Below are positions 11,688-61,341 of a stretch of 64,000 bases of DNA, one piece after another. A program made the translations under genes and the position numbers. Below the pieces are notes generated by a model, which saw only the letters and a program-made list of their open reading frames with translations, made no database searches and was not told the DNA's origin. The DNA comes from Phaeosaccion multiseriatum (lineage: Eukaryota; Protista; Ochrophyta, other classes), in the NCBI GenBank assembly GCA_965112735.1, contig OZ218955.1, positions 1,922,001-1,986,000 on the forward strand, given 5' to 3'. How positions within the stretch are numbered: position 1 is the first letter of the stretch; every line of letters begins with the position of its first letter.

Positions 11688-14600
11688 ATGGAGCTGAAAA
11701 AGAGCACCCTCGAGTACGCTCTGCGAGCAGGGGGGCATGCAATCCCTATGGAGGAGCTGAGAGAAAAGCACCCAGCCGTGTTGGATATCGTGACTCTGTG
11801 AGTAGGACGTCTCATTCAACAAGAAAGAAGGATTAGAGGATTAGCGCAGCCTCCGCACGGCCGCGACGACTTATACTAAACTGCGCTGGTCCTCTACCCA
11901 CTGTCTCTCCTCTCCTCGCTCCCTCTCCTCGCTCGACTGACACTCTGGTGCCCCCTTCCCCCCCCTCTCCTCCTGCTGCTGCTTGGTTGGCTGGCGCGCC
12001 GCCTTGGCTGCCTTCCCGGCGATGTTTCCCACCTCCGATCATCATCATTCGTTTCCCCGCAGTATCCTGGGCGTGACACCCCGCTGCGACCAAGTGAGTG
12101 CGGAGTATTCGAATGCGCCCGTCCGTTTCCTTCTCAACAATGTGTTTGTTGCTGACCATTTCCTTGTGCGCTGCTCTTCTCTTTTGTCACCCCGCCCGAA
12201 TCCGCCTTCCTCCCCCACTCCTTCTCTTCCCCCGCTCCCTACCTGCCTCGTCTCCTCCAATCAGTACTTGGGCATCTGGCCGCCTGCGTTTGGTGAGTAC
12301 CAAAGAAGATGAAAGCCCAGCCAACAACTGCATGTCTGGCAGCCTTCCAGCCATGCATACCCCCCCCTCACCCACATATCCTCCATCCACCCCTTCTGCT
12401 CCTCCCTCCTCGCTCCTCACTGCTCGTCACCCGCCCCTTCATATATCCCGGAAATTCGCCCATGCGGATGGCGCCTTGGTGCATCTGCTCGCCTTGGTGC
12501 ATCTGCTCGCCACTTCTCTTCCGCATCATCTCAGAGACCTACAACGTGTTCGGTAAGCAAAGGAGGCTCAGTCAGTGGTGGGTCCTATTCTATTGACTTG
12601 AGTATGAAAGTTCAACTTTCTCTGCCCCCCTCCCCCTCCTCCTCCTCCTCCTCCTCCTCCTCCTCCTCCTCCTCCTCCTCCTCCTCCTCCTCCTCCTCCT
12701 CCTCCTCCTCCTCCTCCTCCTCCTCCTCCTCCTCCTCCTCCTCCTCCTCCTCCTCCTCCTCCTCCTCCTCCTCCTCCTCCTCCTCCTCCTCCTCCTCCTC
12801 CTCCTCCTCCTCCTCCTCCTCCTCCTCCTCCTCCTCCTCCTCCTCCTCCTCCTCCTCCTCCTCCTCCTCCTCCTCCTCCTCCTCCCTCCCTCCCTGCCCC
12901 CCTCCTCCCCACACCAGTTCCCAACCTCTTCGCCATCCCCTTCTCGGACTTTGGCGTGGGTGCCATCCCGACCAGCCTTCGCTCCATCACGGCCTACTCA
13001 AGCTCCAGGGCTTTTGGTTGTGGGTACTGCAGTGCTCACACCGCTGTCATGGGCGACATCTGGAGCGGCCATGGAGGCACTCTCGAAAAGAACGCCAAGA
13101 TTACCATGACGGACCCTTCTTCCTCCCCCACCTCAGCCTCCTCTATCGGTACCTTTGACGCTCGAGAAGAGGCAGCCATTGCTGTGGGCAAATGCCTGGG
13201 ACAAGCGCCCATCCATCTGACCAGCAGGGCGGTTACTGCATCCACGGAGGTGTTTTCGCTCAAGGAGGAGGAGGCGGTGGTGAATGCGGCGACGGTCATG
13301 GGCTTCTTGAACTTCTTTATGTGAGTTGCTCAGTTGCTAGCTACAGTAGAGGGCGGGAAGAGAGGGGGGAGGTAGAGAGAGACAAGAGAGAGGGCAGGGG
13401 GTAGTGGGGGGCGTCGGGTAGCTCAGCTCAGTCCAGTCCAGCGTTGGTGCGTGTGTGTGTGTGGGCGTGTGTGCTTGTGTGTGTGTGTGTGTGTGTGCGT
13501 GGTGACCCTTGTCTCTGCTTGTTTTTGCTTGCTTTTAACACAGAACCACGCCATGCACGCACACACACACATATACACACACACAAACACACACACACAC
13601 ACACACACAACACACACACGCATCACCAAAACAAAACAGGAGTGCTACTGGCATGCCCCTGGAGAGAGACGCCATAGAGACGTCCACAGCCAAGCTGTCT
13701 GGCACAGGGTGGGAGGTGGGTCAGCACTTCGACCCCAAAGTCGATTGGAAGCTTATGGAGGAGGACGAGGAGGACATGAAGATTGTAGCCCAGAGGCCCA
13801 AGGGCTTCTTCGCGTGGATCAAGACGGTGTTTGGCGCCAAAATGGCCGACAACAAGGCCCTCAGCGCTATCCCCAGCAGCGCGGCAGGTGAGTGCATGGG
13901 TAGGTGGGGGTGTGTGTCGGTGGGTGCATGGGTGGGTGGGTTGGGGTGGGGGAGTGAATGGGGGAGGGAAGGAGTGATGGAGTGAGTGTACAAGTGAGTG
14001 CGCGAGTGAGTGCGTAAGTGCGCGCGTGTGTGAGTGTGTGGGTGCGTGCGTGCGCGAGTGCGTGCGTGGCGTGAGTGAACGGGCTAGAAGGGAGGTGCAC
14101 AGTACAACAACAGGGGAGGAACTAGACACTGGATTGGACAAAGTACAGTGCACCTTTTTCGCACTCTCACTCTTCCTCCTCCTCCTCCTCCTCCTCCTCC
14201 TCCCCCCTCCCTCCCTCCCTGCAACATCAGGCATCTATACCAGATGCAAAAGGGACGCAGGCTTCGTGCCCTTCTACCTCCGTCAGATGACCAACTTGCC
14301 TGCCAAGCGAGCCCTCGCATACGGCTTCCTCCTGCGCCTGCTGGAGGGCACAGACGAAGTGCCTGCTCGCGTCAAGCAGATTATGGCCTATGTGAGCGCC
14401 ACCAATACCGGCAACACCATCCTCAGGGCCCATTACGCCTTCCTCGCCTGCGAGTTGAACGACGCTACCCCAGCCCAGCTACTCGACGCCGTGCAGCAGA
14501 CCAGCCACGGATGGCGAAAGCAAAGTCCAACGCCGCCGGCGCACGTGTCCACAGCGTCACTGATGGCATCCATAGCGCCTTCCTACAAGGCCTCTTCCGC

Positions 14601-15015
14601 CCCCTCCCCCTCCTCCGCCACCTCCTCCGCCACCTCTTTCTCTACCTCCACCACCTCCTCCTCCTCCGCCTCCTCCACCTCTCCCTTCTCCCTGTCCTTC
14701 TCGGCGAAGGAGCGGGTGGCCATCGCCTTTGCCCACGCCACGAGCTTCGCCCCCATCCTCCTCTCGGCAGATCTCATTACAGCCATGATGGAAGCATACA
14801 GTCCCTCGGCCGTGATTGAGCTCGTCCTGACACTGTCGGTGCACACTGCCCTGGACCGGTGGACGTCCTTCTATGCGCCTGTGGCCTACGAACCCGAGCT
14901 GGAGGCCTTTGTGGAGTCGTCGGGCGCGGTACTTGGGTTGCCCCCGGTGGCCACGGGGCCCTCGACACCGGAGCAGAGGGAGCGGGCCATGGAGAGGGCC
15001 ACCTCCGGAAGGTAG
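11688..15015 (+). CDS. AhpD/carboxymuconolactone-decarboxylase-like protein with CxxC (bacterial-type alkylhydroperoxidase family), ~540 aa
   Basis: Exons 11688-11797, 12063-12093, 12265-12292, 12535-12552, 12918-13320, 13640-13887, 14231-15015 sum to 1623 nt in frame. Motifs ILGVTPRCDQYLGIWPPAFETYNVFVPNL, AYSSSRAFGCGYCSAHT, FDAREEAAIA, MGFLNFFM; second degenerate CMD half FSAKERVAIAFA...YSPSAVIELVLTLS. Confidence 0.8.
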
Positions 15016-49323: not shown

Positions 49324-52300
49324 CTAATCCTCCTCCTCATCCTCCTCCTCATCATCATCCTCATCCTCCTCATCCTCCTCCAAGAGCTGCCTCTGCCTCA
49401 ACACCTCGGCGAGCTCCAACTCATCAGGCACGGGCGTCCTCGTGCTGACATTATCCAACCTCGGTAGCGGCAGGCCTGTGAGAAGCATCCTGCAGAGTCG
49501 AGCGTCTGCGGCAAGGTGACTGACTCCCAGTCCGCCTCCGAGTTCGATGTCGGAGTCTTCATTTTCGCTGTTCCAGAACCGGGTGGCCCACCTAAGTGAA
49601 TCGACAGTGCAGCGGTAGTACAGCAATAGAGGGAGTGGCATTCAGAATTGAAGGAATGAATGAATGCCCTGAGTGAAGCCAAGTTCATTTCTCTATTTCA
49701 TGCCCTGATTCTGTTTGTACAGCTCATGATTGGAGAAGGAGCAGGAGCAGGAGGAGGAGGAGGAGGAGGAGGAGGAGGAGGAGGGGGAGGAGGAGGAGGA
49801 GGAGGAGGGGGAGGAGGAGGAGGAGGAGGAGGAGGAGGAGGAGGAGGAGGAGGAGGAGGAGGAGGAGGAGGAGGAGGAGGAGGAGGAGGAGGAGGAGGAG
49901 GAGGAGGAGGAGGAGGAGGAGGAGGAGGAGGAGGAGGAGGAGGAGGAGGAGGAGGAGGAGGAGGAGGAGGAGGAGGAGGAGGAGGAGGAGGAGGAGGAGG
50001 AGGAGGAGGAGGAGGAGGAGGAGGAGGAGGAGGAGGAGGAGGAGGAGGAAGAGGAGAGTAATCAACGTCCTCCTACAAGTGTAACACTATGTCTTACCTG
50101 GCCAGAGACCCGCCCACCAATACCGTCACAGGAGCTGTGCCTGCCTCCTTGGCATCTTCATTGTCGTGCGCCGTGATGAGGGTTTCCAGAATGTCACGCG
50201 TGCCTTGCTGGAAGGCATTACACTCCACCACCCCGGGGAGGCCCAGCCACAGTACAGTTTGCGCTTTGGCCACGGCGCTGCGTATGTCAGTGACAGTGAG
50301 TGGGCCGATGTCAAGCGGGTGGAACCCCGGGGGGATGCCTGGATGGAGTAGTTGGTGGATGAAGAGCGCGAGAGAGGGAGTGTTAGTTTGAGTGTTAGTT
50401 TGTTGTGTGATGCACGCACGCACGTATGCTGTCACTTACTAACGCAATCACTCACTCACGCCACACACACGCACTCAGTCACCCACTTACGCACTCACTC
50501 ACTCACTCACTCACTCACTCACTCACTCACTCACTCACTCACTCACTCACTCACTCTCTCACTCTCTCACTCACTCACCCACTCACTCACCCACTCACTC
50601 ACTCACCCACCCACTCACTCACTCACTCACTCACTCACGCACTCACGCACTCACCCTCTCCATCCACGCTCTTCTCAAGCGTCTCTCCGTCATATTCGAA
50701 ACCCTCCGAGGGGTCAACTTCGGTGTGCATAGACACCACAGAGCCGCTGTCCAGCCCTCCTTCTCCTCCTCCCCCCCCCCCACCTCCTCCTCCTCCTCCT
50801 GCTCCTCCTGCTCCTCCTTCTTCATCTTCTCCTGTACTACCACCCTCCTGTCCCTCCTGCCGCCCCTCGCCCTCCTCTTGCCCCTCCTCTTGCTCCTCCT
50901 CCTCTGCCTCCTCGTCGTCGTCGTCCTCATCAAGGTCTTGGCCAGGGAGCACACCAAACTCGTCGACCTGTGTATGAGAGAGAGAGAGGGGGGGAGGGAG
51001 GGAGGGAGGGAGGGAGGGAGGGAGGGAGGGATAGAGAGAGAGAGGGAGGGAGGGAGAGAGGGAGATGGAGGGAAGGATGGAAGGAGGGAAGGAGGGAAGG
51101 AGGGAAGGAGAGAGGGAGGGAAGGAGGGAAGGAGGAAGGAGGCAGTGAAGTGAGTGAGTTGAATCTGCGGAGCATGAGCTACGAGTGAGGCGACTCACGA
51201 CTCTAGACGGGTATATAGAGGCAGTGAAAGGTAGTGAGTGAAGAGTGACGACGCTACATCTAGATTGAGGCAGTGAAATGAAGGGAGTGAGGAGTGAGTC
51301 GAGTGGGGAGCGACGAGAGAGTGGCTTGGTTACGCACGTTGATGTCTCCGACGATGGCGTCTCGTGGCAGCAGGACTGTGACACCCCTCCTTCGCGCCCT
51401 CGTGAGAAGCTGCCGCCCAACCTCCAGCACGTCAGGAGGGTCGCAGGCAGGCACCTTGACAGTTACAGAAAGTGATGGAGATAGGAGGTACAGTCCGTTA
51501 CATACAGGTAGTAACATTAGGCACACACACGCACACCCACACAAACACAAACACAAACGCATACACAAACATACACACGCACACCCCCACACGTTCCACC
51601 TCCTCCACACACAGAGACACTTACCGGATAGCCCAGCGCGGCAAGCATACTAAAGCCCACCCCTCCTACTAGCACCAACTCGTCCACAAGGTTAATGAGG
51701 GAGTCGAGCAGCTGTACCTGCCCCTCCAGGGATTGGCCCCCCACGATGGTGAGGAACGGATGGCGTCGCACAGACGGGCCCGCCGCCGGACTCAACAACG
51801 ACGCGCTCACAACCTGCATAGACTCCGCTGACTCACTCGTGGTCATGGCTTGCGAGGACTGCGTTGATAGAGTAGACTGAGTGAGGAAGTGCAAGTGGGC
51901 AAGGTCGTCGTGTAGGAGATGGCCCACAAACCACGGGCAACCTCCTCCTCCCCCTGCTTCTCCTCCTCCTCCTGCTGCTGCTCCTCCTCCTCCTCCTGCT
52001 TCTCCTCCTCCTCCTCCTCCTCCTCCTCCTCCTCCTCCTCCTCCTCCTCCTGCTGCTGCTGCTTCTCCTCCTCCCGTCCCAGGCCGGCTTCTTCGTAGGG
52101 TGGAGGGGAAAGTGTGTGCGGGGCTTGCATCGTGGAAGGCATTGGGTGCGTTGGTCACAACGGCGTCGATGGCACCGCTCAGCCTCGCCCCTAAGTCATG
52201 CGAGTCCTTCGTATTCCGCACTGCTGCCTCTGTGTCGGCAGGAGGAGAGGGAGAGACATGGCGGTGTGTGCAGGGGGGTGAGGCAGAGGTGGTACAGAGG

Positions 52301-55300
52301 CAGTGTGCAGAGGGAATGAAGAGGAAGAGTAGGGGGGGGGGTTTGCAGAGGTAGGCAGTGCAGGGCAGAGGGAGTGCAGGGGGTGAGGGGCCTAGAAGGC
52401 ACGGGAAATGAATGAAGGAATGAATGAAGGAATGAATGGCACAAAGAGCATTTCTTGAGGCAGAGGAGTACGTGTGTGCTGCACAGCGTGTCACGACGCT
52501 GACCTAGACCCCAATCGTCCCATCCACTGCCATCCCATCCGCTCCCCTCCCCTACCCTCCCCTCCCCTACCCTACCCTACCCTACCCTCCCCTCCCCTCC
52601 CCCCCCTCCCCTCTCCTCCGCTCCCCTCCGCTTCCCCTGCCCTCACCTCTTGTGGCTCGCTCTCGCGCCTGCTGAGGCGACTCCAGCTGCTGCTTGTCGC
52701 GCTCATCCTCCTCCTCCTCCTGCCCCCCCTGCTGCCCTTGCTGCTCCCTCTCATACCTCGCCTTCCGTTCCTCCTTGCTTTCCTCCAAGTACTCAAAGGA
52801 GGGCAGCCGCTCCTCCTCATCATCACTCAACACCTCCTCCTCCACAGGCCTCTCTGACACCACTCCCTCTGACCCTAGGGCCTCACAGAGCATGATGCGA
52901 GTGGGGCCCCCTGCCCCTCCTCCTCCTCCTCCTCCTCCTCCTCCTCCTCCTCCTCCTCCTCCCCCTCCTCCTCCTCCCCCTCCTCCCTCCTTTGCCCCCC
53001 CCCCCGACGATCGCATTTCTCTCAACGCCTCCGCCATGCTCCACGCTGTGGTGTAAAACTCCACCTCCATCTCCAGCAAGTCTCGCAGCAACTCGCACAC
53101 TCCTCGCAGGCTTAGCCGAGCAGCAGCAGCAGCAGGAGGAGGAGTTGGTGATACAGCAGCAGTTGGTGATACAGTAGCAGTTGATGAGGAGGTGCCCCTC
53201 TCCTCCAGTGGGTCGGGGGGTGGTGGAGGCAGAGAGAGCTCAGAGACTATGGCGATGGCCGCCGGTCGGGCCCCGAGCAGCTGTTGCACGTCCTCGACAG
53301 CTCGGAGGAGAGAGGCGGGTGGGTGCCTCACGGCGGCAGGGGAGAGCTTCCATTCCACTGCTGTATCACCAACTGCTGTATCTGTGGCTGTGTCTGTAGG
53401 CGCATCGCCGACGGCTTGGGGGCCAGTCTGGTGTGTCGGAGGGAGGGAGGGAGGGAGGGAAGGAGACGGGGGGAGGGAGGGAGGGAGGGAGGGAGGGAGG
53501 GAGGGAGGGAGGGAGGGAGGGAGGGAGGGAGGGAGGGAGGATGGAGGCAGCGCGTGCACAAATCAGGGAGTAAAAGGCAAGGGGGGGGAGGGAAGAAGAA
53601 AGAGAAGGGGGAGGGGGGCTGACACTCGGGCACTTGAGCATGGCCAAGCACTACTTCAAGTATTCAAGTCCTTGAAGTCAACACGCAAGTCCTTACGAGT
53701 CCTTACGTAGGTCCTTACGAGTCCTTACATACCGAAGAGTAAGAAGGCACGAGGAACTCCCCGACGTTAAGGTCCACATGGAGCAGCACTCTTTGGTCCG
53801 TCACGTCCTCCACCCTACGGTGAGAGCCGCAGATGGCAGCCGATGACAGCCGATGGTCGTCGGTGATGGTGGCAGATGACACATGGTGGCAGTAGATGGG
53901 GTGCAAAAGGACACGAGGCGAAGAGAGAAGGGAAGCGCATGAGTTTGAGGTTGTGTCGACCTGAGTTTGAGTCTGATTGTGTTTGTGCTTCGAGTTTGAG
54001 TTTGAGTTTGAGTCGAGCTAGACTGGTTCCTCCCATCCCGTCTCTCCTCCTCCTCCTCCTCCTCCTCCTCCTCCTCCTCCTCCTCCTCCTCCTCCTCCTC
54101 CTCCTCCTCCTCCTCCTCCTCCTCCTCCTCCTCCTCCTCCTCCTCCTCCTCCTCCTCCTCCTCCTCCTCCTCCTCCTCCTCCTCCTCCTCCTCCTCCTCC
54201 TCCTCCTCCTCCTCCTCCTCCTCCTCCTCCTCCTCCTCCTCCTCCTCCTCCTCCTCCTCCTCCTCCTCCTCCTCCTCCTCCTCCTCCTCCTCCTCCTCCT
54301 CCTCCTCCTCCTCCTCCTCCTTCTTCTTCTTCTTCTTGTTCTTCTTCTTCTACTCCCGTACCTCCAGACAGCCTTCTCCGAAAGTGGGCCACAGCAGCCC
54401 AAACACTGTGCCCTATCCTTAAGCCTCTCTTGACGGTCCCTGCTCAGGGCCGCGGTCTCAAAGCGGCTAGCGAGGTCGAGAAGCTCGCTCCGGATGGCAG
54501 TGGATGCGAGGATGCGGTACGCAGTTTCAGGATGGCCGGCCTTGTTGGCGGCTGCTGCGTGGGATATAGGGTCATATGGGATAACGCCGCCTCCTGTTGG
54601 TAGGGGGCGGGGGAGGGGAGAGGGAGGGAAGGGGATGGAGGGAGGGGGGGATCCCGTCAGAGGGATATGGGAGCTAGTAGTTTGCATGGCAGTGGGATGG
54701 CAGCCCTCTCACTCACCCTTGGTCTCGACGGGAGGAGTGGGGGCGACGGATGCCCAAGCCGCCTCGTACTCATCACCGAAGCGAAGGATCGGCTCCACTG
54801 GCACCCCCTCGGGCAGTTTGGCGTCCCTCTCTGCATTGGCCATGACCTCCGCCAGTGGAGTGACGCGAGCTGCTCCGGCTTCCTCTCCCTCTCCCTCTCC
54901 CTCTCCCTCTCCCCTTTCTCCTTCTCTTCGCGCTCCTCCTGCTCCTTCCCCTCCTCCTCCTCCTCCTCCTCCTCCTCCTACACCTCCTCCTCCTTCTCCT
55001 TCTCCTTCTCCTCCTCCTCCTTCCTTCGCTGACCCTTCCCCTTCTCCACCCAGGAGGAAGCCAGCGAGCTCATTGCGCATCAGTGCGTCGAGAGTTAGCA
55101 CCGGGCGGAGCTGACACTCAAAGAGTAACGCTCGATACTCAGTCATCAGAGCGCGCTGACGCGCAACGAGCGGGTGCACGGGAGGGGGTGGTGGAGGAAG
55201 GATAGGCGTGTCTTCGCCTCCCTCTTCTTCTTCCTCCTCCTCCTCCTCCTCCTCTTCCTCCTCCCCCTGCTGCTGCTGCTCCTCTTCCTCCCCGACCTCC

Positions 55301-56535
55301 TCCTTCTCCTCCTCCTTCCCGACCTCCTCTTTCTCCTCCCCTTGCTTGTCTCCCTGTTCTCCACTTCCTCCTTCTCCTCCTCCTCCTGCTCCTGCTCCTG
55401 CTCCTCCTCCTCCTCGATCTTCCTCCAACATAGACAAAGGAGGCACAGACTCCACTGGCTCTCCAGGTGGCACCCACTCGTCGAGCTGCATGATGACACT
55501 TAGCACCGAGTCCACACTCCCATCCCACTCCTCCAGCGTGAGACACTGAAGCATGTCCCGCAGTGACGCCATAGACACCTCTCTGCCTCCCTCCCTCTCC
55601 TCCTCCTCCTCCTCCTCCTCCTCCTCCCCGTCCTCCCGTACAAGAGGGGGTCTTTCCACCCCATCTGGCCCTAGTTCTGGTGGTGTGGCTTCTTCTCCAT
55701 CCTTCCTGGCCCCTTGCTCTTGAGCATCTTTGTCCTCGTCTTTAGATACGTCCAATTCCTCCTCCTCCTTCTCCTCCTTCTCCTCCTTCTCCTTCTCCTT
55801 CTTCGTCTTCTTCTCCTGCCCCTCCTCTCCCTCCTCTCCCTTCTCCTCTCGGGCGGAAGCTCGGATGACATCAGCATCAGCAGCAGCAGCAGTATCAGTT
55901 GGTGATACAGCGGTGGCGGCAGCGGCGGCGCCGGTCTTCTCTTCCTCCTTCCTCGCCGCCTCCTCCTTCCTCCTCCTCTCCTCTTCCTCATACACCCCCT
56001 GCTCCGCGGCGAGTCGCACGCCCTTGGCCCTCGAGAGAAGCGCTGCCCACTTGTCGAAGCGTTGCGGGGTGAAGTGTAACGCTCGGCGGGCGTTGGCGTT
56101 ACAGAAAAGCGTTTGCTGCTGCCTGCGAATGTCTTCCTCCCGCAGCGGGGTCTTGACGCTCCTCACCACGTCCGTCAAGAGGTCTTCGAGCTTCACCTTC
56201 ATCACCTGTTTGTGCAGAGAGTGAGGGCAAGGCCAGAGCAGTACGGGGCAAGGGGGGAGAGAGAGGTGAGGGGGGTTACGGGGCAAGGGTGGAGAGAGAG
56301 GGAGGGGGGAGTAGGAGCACAGGGGCAGCGGCGGGGGTAGTGGAGAGCGTGAGTGGAGCGGGATGGAGTGGATGAGAAGTAGGATGGAGTGGAGTGGATT
56401 GGAGTGGGGTGGAGTGGAGTGGAGTGGAGTGGACTCCCTCCCTCCTTCCTTCCTTCCTTCCTTCCTTCCTTCCTTCCTTCCTTCCTTCCTTCCTGCCTGT
56501 CTGTCTGCCTGCCTGCCTGTCTGTCTGCATGCATG

Positions 56536-56579
<44 letters not shown>

Positions 56580-59500
56580 CCAGTCTGTCTGCCTGCCTGT
56601 CTGCCTGTCTGCCTGCCTGCCTGCCTGCCTGTCTGCCTGAGTAACGGACTGAGTGACTGACCTTTGCCCCGGTGCGTGCCTGCAGCTCATTCCGCACGTG
56701 CTGCTTCGTGTCAACGCTGTGCGCCGCCCCGAGGAGCACCACCTGAGGGGAGGAGATGGTAATGGATGGCAGTGGATGGCAGTGGATGGCAGTGGATATG
56801 GGGCGTTGGGGGGGGGGGGGGGATCAAGGTGTATCGAGAGCAGAGAAGAGGAGGAGCTCTCTCTCTATCGAGTGTGTGTGTGTGCGTGGGGGGGGGTGGT
56901 GTGTGTGTTTGTGTGTATGAGTGTGTACGTGCGTTTATGTGTATGTGTTTTCGTGCGTGTATGTATGTGTGAGCATTCGTGTGTGTATGTGTGTGTGCGT
57001 ATGTGTGTGGGTGCGGATGTGTGTGTGTGCGTGTGTGTTTATGTGTGTGTGCGTATGTGTGTGTATGTGTGTGTGTGTGTGTGTGGGAGTGTGTGCATGT
57101 GGATGGGTATGTCTACAGAGAGAAGGGGAGGAACATACCTCGTAGCTCGGCGGCGGGTGGTTTGGGTCCCCAAGCAGCCGCCCTTCGGCTGAGCACTGCA
57201 GGAAGGCCGCGGGGGGCGTTGTCTCCAACAACCACTATAGCCAACAGACCGGCAGGGGTGGCACAGGGGTGGCACAGGGATGGCAGTAGATGGCAGTAGA
57301 TGGTAGCAGAGAGCAGCAGAGGGGCAGCGGCCAGTCAGGAGTCAGTCAAGCAGGCTCCCAAGAAAGCCATGGGCGGTCATAATGCCGATTGCCAATTGCG
57401 GCTTGCTGTGTCTCTCCCTCCCCCCTCCCTCCCCCCTTCCCACAGTCGGAGCAGAGCACTGACTGACTGACACCAGGCACTGACTGATTGGCTCAGTGAC
57501 TGACTGACTGACACCAGGCACTGACTGAGTGACTGACTGACTGACACCAGGCACTGACTGATTGACTGACTGACTGACACCAGGCACTGACTGATTGACT
57601 GACTGACTGACTGACTGACTGACTGACTGACTGGTTGACTGGCATCAGGCACTGACGGACTGACTGACACCAGGTACTGACTGACTGACTGACTGACTGG
57701 CACCAGGTACTGACTGACACGAGGCACTTACTGACTGACTGACTGACTGACACCAGGCACTTACTGACTGACTGACTGACTGACACCAGGCGCTCCCTCA
57801 CCCACCTTGTCACGGTAGGCTCCAGCGGAGGGACTTGAGAAGGTGAAGGGGATGGACTTGCGCGCTCCTGCGTGTGTGTGAGGAAGGGTAATGATGGAGT
57901 GGGGAAGGGGTGCGGGTATGAGGATGAGGGGATGGGGCTTCCGTTACACACGACGCGCATATACACAAACGCATCCACACACACTCACACACACACACAC
58001 ACACGCACACACTCACACACATGCCCACACACACACACACACACCCGGTAGCAGTGTTCCCTTAGCCTCGTGACAGAAGAATCTCCCGTTGGGGTCTGCC
58101 CTCTTCTCGGCCTCTGCTGTCCCAGCTGCGTGGTGTTGAGCCACAATGCCCTCCTCTGGCGGCACTCGTGTCCAGCGGTAGAATAGCACGGTGCTGCCCC
58201 CGTTGTGCATCTCCACTGAGGCCGTCACCGCTGTGCCTACTCCGGGCGGAGGGAGAGGGAGGAGGCGCGGGGGGGGTGCAGCAGCAGCAGTTGGTGATAC
58301 GGTAGTAAGTGATACAGCAGCAGCAGCCGTTGGTGATTATCGCCTCCTCTCCCCTCCCACCCCCCTTCCCTTCTCCCCGGTCCACTGACCTGCCGGGGCG
58401 TCAAGCACGAGGCTAGAGCCGACAATCTCGAGGACAGGGCCAATGCGTGTTCGCACCGACTGCCGCCTGCGCTGTAGAGACGGGTCTACGACATCTGTGG
58501 CCGTTGGAGCTCGCCTCAAGAGGGCAAGCTCCTATGGACGGGGGGGGAGGGAGGGAGGGAGGGAGGGAGGGAGGGAGGGAGAGAGGGAGGGAGCGAGGGA
58601 GGGAGGGAGAGAGGGAGAGAGGGACAGAGGGACATAGGACAGCGAGAGATTGAGAAGGCTAAGCAAGGAAAAGCATCGAGCGAACGCATCGAATCCCCAA
58701 AGTTGAACAAGAAGGAGCAACTTCCACTGCCTTCCACGGTCTTCTACTTGCTCCCACTGCCTTCCACTGCCGTCCCATCCTCACCTCCTCCAAGTCATTC
58801 AGGCGTAGCTGCTCAAAGTACTCCTTGCTTGAGGCCAGTGCCCAGGAAAATAGGTCTACTCCCTGTGGACGAGGACACCGGGCATTTGGGCAGGACACGG
58901 GAGGGAGGGAGGGAGGGAGGGAGGGAGGGAGGGAGGGAGGGAGGGACGGAGGTGGGTGGGTGGGACGTGGGTGGGTGGTTGGGCTTTGGCTTGGAGGGAC
59001 TTTCCACACTCAGACACGCACACGCACCCCCCCACACACACACACACACTCAGACACACACACACATACACATACACACACACACGCACGCACGCACGCA
59101 CGCACCTGCGCGCAGAGACCCAGCGACATGGTCATGTCAACATCGGAGGGACGCAACATGTGGATGGTCTTCTCCAGCTGCGCCTTCCTCAACTGCAAGG
59201 GACGGCTGCTCCTCCAGCTCTTGCGGTCCTTCGAGATCTTGGGGACACGCGGCGGTCTAAGGAGAGGGGTTTGTTGGCAGTGGGTGCGGGTGTGAGGTGA
59301 GAAGGAGGGAAGCAGGCAGTGGATGGAGTGGATGGGGCAAGGCAAGAAGGTCAGTCATAGGGCCGCGAAAGAAGGAGGGTCGCTGAAGGGTAGGTGGAGA
59401 GTGTCGCCAAACAAGGGACGCTGAAGAACGTACTTGCGCACGAGCTTGGGTGCTGGTGTGTGGTCGCTGACCGCGCAGAACAGCCCGCTGAAGATGTTGC

Positions 59501-61341
59501 CGACGTTGGTGTAGCGCTCTCCGTAGCCGCGAAGCGTCATCTGCCAATACGAGTCGCTGCCGTACTTCTCATGGGAAGGGATGGCAGCCTGTGCATATAT
59601 ATACGTGTGTGTGTGTGTGTGTGTGAGTATGTGTGTATGTGTGTGCGCGCGCGTGTGTGTGAGCGTGTGCGTATGTGTGCGTGGGTGCGTATATATGTGT
59701 GTGTCCAGGGTAGCGTGTTAGGCAAAAGTGGGTAGATACACATCCGGCACGACGCCAGCCACCATGAAAGACGAAACGACGTCAACCCCCCCCCCCCCCT
59801 CCATCAGTAGGACAGACGGCCGGCCAAGCTCAAGCTAAGCTCAAGCCGTGTGGCGACGACTTGCCTGAATGAGCTGATACTCCTCAAACCTCTCCCGATT
59901 GTCGTAGTCATCCGCCGAGCTCATGAGGAGGCTTTGGCTCGTCTGCCCCGTCATCTTGGCGAGGCCGCCCTTAATGCGGCCCCACTCCTTGTTGCGCGAG
60001 CTCCACAGACTCATGGCGGACGCCTCCTTCTTCATCTCATTCCTCTCCCCTAAAGTGAGCTTGCCCATAAGGTACTCATCCTTCTTGCGCGTCACGCCGC
60101 GCACGTACTCTGCGCGTTCTGCTGCTTGCACGAGCCGGCTCACGTGCTTGTCTCTCTGTCGCTTGGAGAAGTAAGCACCGAGGGTAGAGAGATGGGCCGC
60201 GCTCGCTCCGAGAGCGCTTCCCGCGCTGTTGCCCGAGCGACTCCACGCCCCGCTGCTGCTGCCTGCCGGTCTAGGTGACCCTGCCGGCCCCCCTCCTCCC
60301 TCCCCTCCTCGCTCTCCTCCCTCAGGGTTATGCGGACGCGTCGCTTCTCGGGACCACCCTGCTCCTCGTCCTCCAGCGTCATCATCTGTCTGGTCGCTGC
60401 TCCGGCGATGGGTGAACGTGGATGGCATAAAAGGGTGCACAAAAGAAAAGGAAAGAAGAAGACAAAGAAGGTTGAATCGATGGATCATGCATTTGGAATG
60501 GTCCGGATTGGACCACCTTCCACACATGACCACAGAACAACCCTCGCACTCACGTGTTCTGCTGCTGCTGCTGCTGCTGCAGGTCGTTCTTCCCTGCGGG
60601 CCTGGGCTCCTCCTGGGAGTCCTCGTCGTCGTCGTCGAACCCTCCACGGCCCCTCTTGGCGGGTTTGGGCGAGGCCGCGGGCTTGGTTTGGAGCGCGTTG
60701 ATTTGCTCAAACGCCTCCACAGAGCCCAGGAGGGACCGAGCCAGGGGTCGTCCGTCCGGCGCCCATTCGACACCACTCGTAACGTCTAGCACAACGTTCT
60801 CCACTTGGTTCGAGCTACGAGATACCACAGAAATGGGTGACAGGGCGCCCGCATTCCCCCCTCCTCCGCCTCGCATACCACCGCCGCCGCACCCAGCATT
60901 GTAGTCACCGCCGTAGGGGCTGGGAGAGGCCTTATTCCCTTGGAAGGACGTGAGATTTCCGTCTCTACTCAGCCTTGGTCGGCGTGATACCAGCACTTGA
61001 CGCCGCATGCGGTTGGGCGACGAGCCCTGGCTATCGCTAAAGTCACCGTCGTCATCAAACTCGCCTTCTCTGTTGTGTTGTCCTCCTCGTCCTCCACCTC
61101 CTGCTCCTGCACCTGGGGCCTCCATCTCTGGACGCTCTCCATCATCGACTCCGAGGCCGACAGGCGGGGCTGGTGTGCCACGATTCTTGACCACGACCAC
61201 AGTCCTCTTCTTCTTGGTAGGCTTGACTTTACGGTCCACTCCCGCCAACGAGAGTCCGTCCCCACCTGCATCAGCCCCACCCTGCTCTGCATACTGCTGC
61301 GGAGCTGGGGAAAGATCCTCGTGCTGCCGGCCTCCCCCCAT
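49324..61341 (-). CDS. MYCBP-associated protein (MYCBPAP)-like ciliary protein fused to a C-terminal degenerate phosphoglycerate kinase domain
   Basis: 19 phase-consistent exons: 61341-60554, 60399-59865 (GC donor), 59588-59434, 59256-59106, 58862-58785, 58531-58390, 58236-58045, 57867-57806, 57234-57139, 56742-56662, 56205-54717, 54593-54362, 53814-53733, 53427-52647, 52229-51625, 51454-51338, 50967-50655, 50338-50098, 49591-49324. MYCBPAP-like: [47 protein letters not shown], Ig/ASH-like [43 protein letters not shown]-like: [41 protein letters not shown]. Confidence 0.85.
57455..57790. repeat. Intronic compound minisatellite (GACT)n-GACACCAGGCA
   Basis: About 10 copies of CTGACACCAGG separated by (GACT)n; the same unit recurs at ~6980-7030. 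Confidence 0.9.

Follow-up and report, generated by a model that had tools for sequence, protein, structure and literature searches.

A MYCBPAP–phosphoglycerate kinase fusion gene in the alga Phaeosaccion multiseriatum, with a predicted pseudoenzyme lobe and a probable central-apparatus location

In the ochrophyte alga Phaeosaccion multiseriatum, a locus on the minus strand of contig OZ218955.1 (assembly GCA_965112735.1) raises the question of whether a MYCBPAP-like ciliary protein and a phosphoglycerate kinase (PGK) fold are encoded by one gene or by two neighbours and, if by one, what role a glycolytic fold may play in such a protein. The locus lies between positions 61341 and 49324 of the window, by which is meant the whole stretch of 64,000 nt that was analysed (contig positions 1,922,001 to 1,986,000, forward strand), and all coordinates given below refer to this window. 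An earlier sequence-only reading had proposed a fusion of the two modules in which most catalytic positions of PGK are changed, and had regarded it as undescribed. The comparisons presented here indicate that the gene is a single one, that it belongs to a family of MYCBPAP-PGK fusion proteins present in many protists, and that the PGK-like domain is predicted to be catalytically dead throughout this family.

The gene model comprises 19 exons with a coding sequence of 6261 nt, encoding 2086 amino acids (aa) with zero internal stops, and its start (ATG at 61341) and stop codon (49326-49324) are the same as in the sequence-only reading. It was obtained by enumerating the in-phase GT/GC-AG junctions between coding anchors, with relatives as a guide, at a locus where the stop-to-stop frames consist of coding-like pieces with microsatellite-filled introns between them. 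The best-defined junctions show consensus splice sites. The junction AGG/GTGAGT (54717) to CAACAG/ (54593) and the junction GAG/GTACGG (54362) to CACCGTAG/ (53814) were each the top-scoring in-phase GT-AG site, while the in-phase alternatives listed for the latter have mostly GC or weak donors, and all of them translate a GAA/GGA repeat as poly-Arg. For the intron at 59864-59589 a GC donor was chosen because it restores YQLIQ/..., matching YQLIQAAVPPHEKYG in the Chrysoparadoxa relative P0093 described below. The exon 2 acceptor and the exon 3/4 and 7/8 boundaries are tentative, which leaves the conclusions unaffected.

Exon 18 (79 aa) served as the query of an exhaustive HMMER search for relatives of the window protein, which led to long proteins with a PGK match near the C-terminus, and P0093, P0094 and P0095 were added through a search with the family alignment. 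Eight proteins contain the MYCBPAP family PF14646 followed by the PGK family PF00162 (P0004, P0010, P0013, P0014, P0056, P0093, P0094 and P0095), and they are independent, each coming from a different 50 %-identity cluster; in the first five of them PF14646 is matched at E-values (E) of 1e-31 to 1e-38, ahead of PF00162. Seven of the eight are collinear with the locus in tblastn, from ~61020 to 49340 on the minus strand, with P0094 matching one exon only. P0010 is an intronless open reading frame (ORF) of 1392 aa recovered from five independent environmental contigs, three of which were examined, and in P0004 the ORF takes up 4458 of the 5247 nt of a Logan contig. The closest labelled orthologue is P0093, an annotated but unnamed protein of Chrysoparadoxa australica (1524 aa, 11.5-kb multi-exon gene, assembly GCA_964200425.2), which combines MYCBPAP with PGK, agrees with the window protein in its dead motifs and loop motifs, and is 38 % identical to it in the MYCBPAP region and ~50 % identical in the PGK C-lobe. 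P0093 is ~560 aa shorter, and its low-complexity Gly and Glu inserts are far less extended than those of the window protein. With a MYCBPAP module at the N-terminus and a PGK-like domain at the C-terminus of one polypeptide, the window protein thus belongs to the same fusion family, for which the ESM Atlas holds a 57-member cluster already auto-named for both domains. Homology searches with the PGK region of P0004 and with a region of P0093 each retrieved the query only, and neither the annotated protein of the locus itself nor brown-algal orthologues were recovered by the homologous-protein searches, whose candidate lists were dominated by low-complexity words.

The possibility that two adjacent genes, one MYCBPAP-like and one PGK-like, were falsely joined through an intergenic open frame has to be weighed against these relatives. 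It would be in line with the length and simple-repeat content of the joining intron. However, both domains lie within single uninterrupted ORFs of relatives, and since P0010 is one such ORF, the fusion requires no splicing assumption. The Chrysoparadoxa protein is likewise contiguous on both sides of the junction, with residues 904-984 of P0093 aligning unbroken across the exon 12/13 boundary (46 % identity, E 1e-18), while exon 12 contains no stop and exon 13 begins in the middle of PGK strand 1, without ATG context. The two-gene arrangement was therefore rejected on the comparative evidence of the relatives' ORFs and the Chrysoparadoxa continuity, and is regarded as most improbable. The claim that a single phase-consistent frame runs through 54717/54593 and 54362/53814 was borne out by the intact 2086-aa frame, the best in-phase sites and the collinear relatives, and judged by these comparisons the locus is a single gene with a MYCBPAP-like N-half and a PGK-like C-half.

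The identity of the N-half is established through its relatives. In blastp, model residues 287-783 match residues 166-648 of P0093 at E 3e-93, and model residues 189-772 match residues 97-670 of P0004 at E 8e-71, both of these proteins being themselves recognized by PF14646 (E 1.1e-34 for P0093 and 9.8e-38 for P0004). An N-half without MYCBPAP similarity, which the sequence-only reading had named as grounds for giving up the fusion, was accordingly not what was found. Among the raw ORF pieces, Pfam gave a weak PF14646 match on a piece upstream of the PGK pieces, and the most conserved MYCBPAP block of the family, starting SYWQMTLR, is encoded in exon 3. A phmmer search with exon 3 alone gave zero matches in the Protein Data Bank (PDB). 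P0004 also matches solved axonemal chains, namely Chlamydomonas FAP147 (PDB 7n61/7som, 976 aa) at E 6.4e-16 and MYCBP-associated protein (PDB 9ijj, 932 aa) at E 1.9e-6. C2a is the projection formed by FAP65, FAP147 and FAP70 (PMC13345628), and within it FAP147 lies toward the periphery (10.64898/2026.01.30.702858), so the proposal that relatives of the N-half reside in the central apparatus was supported. The Chlamydomonas FAP147 and mammalian MYCBPAP chains share the homologous MYCBPAP module and are C2a components, but have no PGK domain, and a profile of the pseudo-PGK failed to match either of them in the PDB even at E 10; there is therefore no hidden PGK remnant in these unfused orthologues. 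In P0004 and P0014, weak Pfam matches to the fourth Ig-like domain of CFAP65 were observed within the MYCBPAP region (E 7e-4 and 4e-3), which hints that part of MYCBPAP has an Ig/ASH-like fold related to this C2a partner. The linkers of the fused relatives, as seen in the family consensus, are similar in composition to the one that follows the MYCBPAP region of the window protein (Table 1). P0095 (2601 aa, Logan) has an IQ calmodulin-binding motif at residues 2093-2110, between its MYCBPAP and PGK parts.

The C-half was recognized directly by PF00162, whose cut-off is 27 bits, on two ORF pieces of the minus strand: 50097-50435 (44.0 bits, E 2e-11, profile positions 280-338) and 51520-52503 (29.5 bits, E 5e-7, profile positions 180-233). 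One exon alone retrieved PGK chains from the PDB sequences with phmmer at E 1.5e-7, and a hidden Markov model (HMM) based on five canonical PGKs that the search had brought up matched the gene model at E 1.3e-30 in four collinear pieces, of which those in the C-lobe scored 38.7 and 48.9 bits. Because the N-lobe signal of the window protein is faint, the claim that PGK is tracked from end to end rests on the family profile and on the model of a relative, and on these grounds it was upheld. The profile, made from seven fused proteins including the window model and aligned independently of canonical PGKs, matched five canonical PGKs in hhalign with a probability of 100 and E 3.7e-49 over 387/394 columns. 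Against the PDB, it matched cytosolic PGK1 of animals and yeast best (E 3.5e-48), and the enzymes of bacteria, plastids and kinetoplastids scored lower. Structure prediction was performed on the Chrysoparadoxa domain (P0093:950-1524), for which AlphaFold2 gave a mean predicted local distance difference test (pLDDT) score of 67.6, with the low-confidence stretches corresponding to the inserted loops. This model matched solved PGKs over nearly the whole enzyme (Foldseek E 1.6e-28, target-normalized template modelling (TM) score 0.79-0.82). Taken together, profile and model indicate that the PGK-like domain has the complete two-lobe (Rossmann-like) PGK fold. It shares this fold with canonical PGK (PF00162) but differs in its position behind ~1280 aa of other sequence and in seven inserted loops that are Gly-rich, acidic or Ser/Thr-rich and include two poly-Gly runs and two acidic loops, in agreement with the acidic and Gly loops proposed earlier. 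The net charge of the domain in the window protein is -73. Both the exon and the family profile also matched PDB 9io5 chain O, a 511-aa ‘phosphoglycerate kinase’ that is present as three chains in one entry and is longer than normal PGK.

The catalytic state of the domain was assessed in an alignment of the window protein with six relatives. The motif SHLGR is replaced by SELSL in the window protein and by TQLHV, LEIGL, SRLSR, SELTS, TELTS and TDLTP in the relatives, and WNGP by WLGL in the former and by WHGT, WHGM, WHGL, WTGL, WTGL and WAGL in the latter. ENLRF, DAFGxAHR, GGGD and STGGGA, which read CEALF, NAPNAFHD, VGGS and AADARL in the window protein, are lost in the relatives too; GGAKVSDK reads GGQSLEGQ, and no relative keeps both lysines. 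The motifs that bind substrate, phosphate and Mg are thus all replaced in 7/7 aligned fused proteins, and the features of an active PGK (EC 2.7.2.3) are absent, namely the basic patch for 3-phosphoglycerate, the lysines of catalysis, an Asn in WNGP and an Asp in GGGD as well as the STGGGA loop. The replaced phosphate and Mg ligands correspond to K215, K219, N336, D374 and T375 in human PGK1 numbering. Each catalytic-motif change listed in the sequence-only reading was found in the translation and the alignment, as were the motifs that it described as retained (VDLNV, LDIGP and the ribose Glu in GVVE). What is kept family-wide is the C-lobe core LPxDxxxGD, LDxG, WxGxxG and FQxGTR, the motifs DDEEERLP and GF[DE]YDGET inside the insertions, and a conserved C-terminal extension. 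As the residues for 3-phosphoglycerate, nucleotide phosphates and Mg are lost, phosphoryl transfer appears impossible, and since the replacement extends to all seven proteins, the family is judged to be an old pseudoenzyme whose dead state is not specific to the alga. On the strength of these alignments the PGK-like domain is predicted to be catalytically dead across the fused family.

Table 1. Parts of the MYCBPAP-PGK gene model in window coordinates
Feature	Position	Strand	Remarks
Exons 1-5	61341-60554, 60225-59865, 59588-59413, 59256-59106, 58862-58785	-	
Exons 6-10	58531-58390, 58239-58039, 57864-57806, 57234-57139, 56742-56662	-	
Exons 11-15	56205-54717, 54593-54362, 53814-53733, 53427-52647, 52229-51625	-	
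Exons 16-19	51454-51338, 50967-50655, 50338-50098, 49591-49324	-	
GC-AG intron, exons 2/3	59589..59864	-	CAG/GCAAGT ... CACAG/, best in-phase junction
MYCBPAP-homology region	55990..60155	-	aa 287-783, exons 2 to 11
Acidic Glu/Gly-rich low-complexity linker	54718..55989	-	in exon 11, aa 784-1207, net charge -81
Exon 12, conserved helical segment	54362..54593	-	leads straight into first PGK strand; also in family consensus
Intron 12, between MYCBPAP half and PGK half	53815..54361	-	547 nt; GAA/GGA simple repeat of ~280 nt at 54044-54321
PGK-like domain, predicted pseudoenzyme	49438..54381	-	aa 1279-2049, end of exon 12 to exon 19
Acidic C-terminal tail and stop	49324..49437	-	net charge -20; similar tail in P0093 and family consensus

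The introns of the gene are filled with a few recurring microsatellites of TCCC, CAGG and CA type, for example at 53430-53560, 50970-51180, 58540-58660 and 56300-56620, some of which read THTHTH, and short-read genome contigs end at such microsatellites within the gene. The repeat in intron 12 (54044-54321) is open in all three minus-strand frames, as poly-Glu, poly-Arg and poly-Gly. Within exon 11, the segment 55834-55959 was observed at 30-60 times the word depth of its flanks in the DNA runs, with many loose ends; it is a short GCA/GCT-rich coding stretch common to many other sites of the genome. In Chrysoparadoxa, a UEV/Vps23 (ESCRT-I) gene lies next to the P0093 gene, in opposite orientation, at 13301-14958 of the examined stretch of contig CAXMZZ020000033.1.

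The fusion itself has been named before, and the suggestions that it was undescribed and confined to stramenopiles had to be abandoned. A Tetrahymena thermophila protein, TTHERM_00856750, has been listed as MYCBPAP-PGK, and discussed as a possible moonlighting PGK with a link to Myc and transcription (Rojas-Pirela et al. 2020, PMC7729029), a preprint names MYCBPAP-PGK as one of several ciliary proteins for which it reports contacts with the inside of the CAGE complex (bioRxiv 10.1101/2025.09.22.677704), and the ESM Atlas cluster name refers to both domains; the literature thus places the fusion in a ciliate also. The Tetrahymena protein is ciliary and has the same named architecture, its orthology being suggested by architecture alone, and in the review it counts as a metabolic PGK, with no statement of a pseudoenzyme or a central-apparatus link (PMC7729029). 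The fusion is found in many protists, and the window gene is a further member of a named but uncharacterized family. Literature on FAP147 together with PGK, on PGK in the central apparatus and on brown-algal flagellar proteomics yielded no description of a stramenopile fusion, and no paper was found that states a family-wide dead PGK, the fusion in stramenopile algae or a C2a link.

A dead glycolytic fold in a flagellum is known from Trypanosoma brucei, in which PGKL (Tb927.11.2380), a PGK-like protein bound to the axoneme, is without key residues of catalysis (Brown et al. 2014, PMC4106842). The theme is shared with the window protein, but the architecture differs: in PGKL an N-terminal PGK is followed by a cyclic nucleotide (cNMP)-binding domain and a helix-turn-helix (HTH) region, without MYCBPAP, whereas the PGK-like domain of the window protein is C-terminal, and neither cNMP-binding nor HTH domains were found by Pfam on any of its exon pieces or in any relative. 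MYCBPAP is not mentioned by Brown et al. (PMC4106842), and according to one preprint T. brucei has no clear FAP147 homologue. Large proteins with 2-4 near-canonical PGK stretches were also observed in gastropods (P0009, Aplysia californica XP_035826093.1; P0012 and P0090, Bulinus truncatus; P0022, Physella acuta; 958-1918 aa). No MYCBPAP module was found in them by Pfam, and the PGK stretches of the Aplysia protein are accompanied by THEG (testicular haploid expressed) repeats; they may represent a different, sperm-related route to large PGK proteins.

The explanation preferred here, to which a probability of roughly 0.7 is assigned as a whole, is that the gene is the orthologue of MYCBPAP-PGK, that its product is anchored in C2a and that the PGK lobe acts there as a dead structural or docking body. 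As in the unfused orthologues of Chlamydomonas and mammals, it is most likely through the MYCBPAP/FAP147 module that the protein is anchored in the C2a projection. The PGK lobe would then form a rigid, strongly acidic structural or protein-docking body at the periphery or outer face of C2a, and the conserved family-specific loop motifs, together with the acidic loops, may constitute a new interaction surface. A negative surface charge has been described for central-apparatus projections and for radial-spoke heads, and an acidic spacer would be in keeping with it.

A different role was also contained in the sequence-only reading, which had offered a structural or an ADP/ATP-sensing function as two options. 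As a sensor, the dead lobe would bind ADP, ATP or adenosine and report the energy state of the flagellum to the central apparatus, and the residues of the conserved core are indeed concentrated in the C-lobe, near what was once the nucleotide site, with an adenine/ribose pocket partly kept in the window protein and in P0093 and P0004, the relatives nearest to it (VGGQS, LVGGVG, LDIGP and PGVVE). However, the phosphate and Mg ligands, including the GGG loop, are replaced in every member; the glycine pairs of the adenosine pocket are gone in P0010, P0013, P0014 and P0056, and the ribose Glu, kept in P0056, P0093, P0004 and the window protein, is gone in P0010, P0013 and P0014. Because the pocket is lost in several members, binding is not a conserved property of the family. 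The alignment leaves residual nucleoside binding possible in the subgroup to which the window protein belongs and does not support it family-wide; a sensor is therefore considered unlikely, and of the two options it is the structural one that is favoured.

Two further explanations were weighed. The lobe could be a PGK isoenzyme that is active and, being tethered to the axoneme, regenerates ATP locally, an idea that draws on glycolytic enzymes being present in the flagella of several organisms (PMC7729029, PMC4106842) and on the assumption, made for the Tetrahymena protein in the 2020 review, of a PGK with an added moonlighting role (PMC7729029). It was rejected, and is judged very improbable, since, in the window protein and six relatives alike, replacements have removed the basic residues for 3-phosphoglycerate, both lysines, the WNGP Asn, the GGGD Asp and the STGGGA loop. 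Conversely, loss of catalysis and the expansion of Gly and Glu low-complexity runs in the loops could be taken as signs of decay, the lobe being a relic of a formerly active flagellar PGK carried as functionless baggage on MYCBPAP, in keeping with the idea of a lost flagellar glycolytic pathway in trypanosomatids (PMC4106842). A relic would hardly be expected, however, to retain the full fold and ~30 invariant positions among proteins that are 29-39 % identical, or loop motifs that are conserved and a C-lobe with 50 % identity between the window protein and Chrysoparadoxa. The retained fold, invariant positions and loop motifs point to purifying selection instead of decay, and the relic is given very little credence.

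Several observations nevertheless weigh against the structural explanation or against parts of the gene model behind it. There is no PGK domain in the solved chains of FAP147 and MYCBPAP, so no structure places the extra lobe, and the C2a location is known for Chlamydomonas and mammals only, from which it is extended here to a stramenopile. Several residues of the adenosine pocket (GG of GGAK, GG of IGGG and G-V-x-E) persist in the window protein, P0093 and P0004, which leaves some room for nucleoside binding. The N-lobe of the window protein reached just 1.8 and -3.3 bits with the PGK HMM, and PF14646, applied exon by exon, scored 17.2, 12.3 and 21.7 bits, each below its gathering cut-off of 24.5; these sub-threshold matches are collinear, covering profile positions 3-53, 125-158 and 262-314 on exons 2, 4 and 7, and the MYCBPAP-like nature of the N-half was confirmed by homology to P0093 and P0004. 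The four sequencing runs that contain the locus are all DNA, as their contigs cross the intron at 54593-54717, and the RNA runs that were found share only 0.07-0.09 of the sampled words, come from other organisms and probably match through low-complexity words. The single-gene case rests on comparative evidence, which is graded strong.

A broader reading of the family may also be put forward, although it is regarded as doubtful. The dead PGK might be an ancient addition to C2a, widespread in stramenopiles, alveolates and rhizarians (SAR), perhaps older, and lost in green algae and animals. It would then be the molecular fossil of a flagellar glycolytic module, descended from a once-active flagellar PGK, with an origin possibly shared with the kinetoplastid axonemal PGK-like protein. 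If this were true, the fossil module would later have found a new use as a charged surface for contacts on the side of the radial spokes.

With the P. multiseriatum gene, a fusion protein that has so far been known by name, without having been studied, gains a labelled member from a stramenopile alga. Genes of this kind are now labelled ‘3-phosphoglycerate kinase’ or left unnamed, and the loss of catalytic motifs described here may be of use in their annotation. The partner module of the PGK-like domain appears to be the C2a protein FAP147/MYCBPAP and not a Myc-related factor, which re-frames the published reading of the Tetrahymena protein. The fusion also bears on a wider question, the recurrence of dead glycolytic folds in axonemes, in which the PGK lobe would serve as a structural or docking body of the central apparatus.

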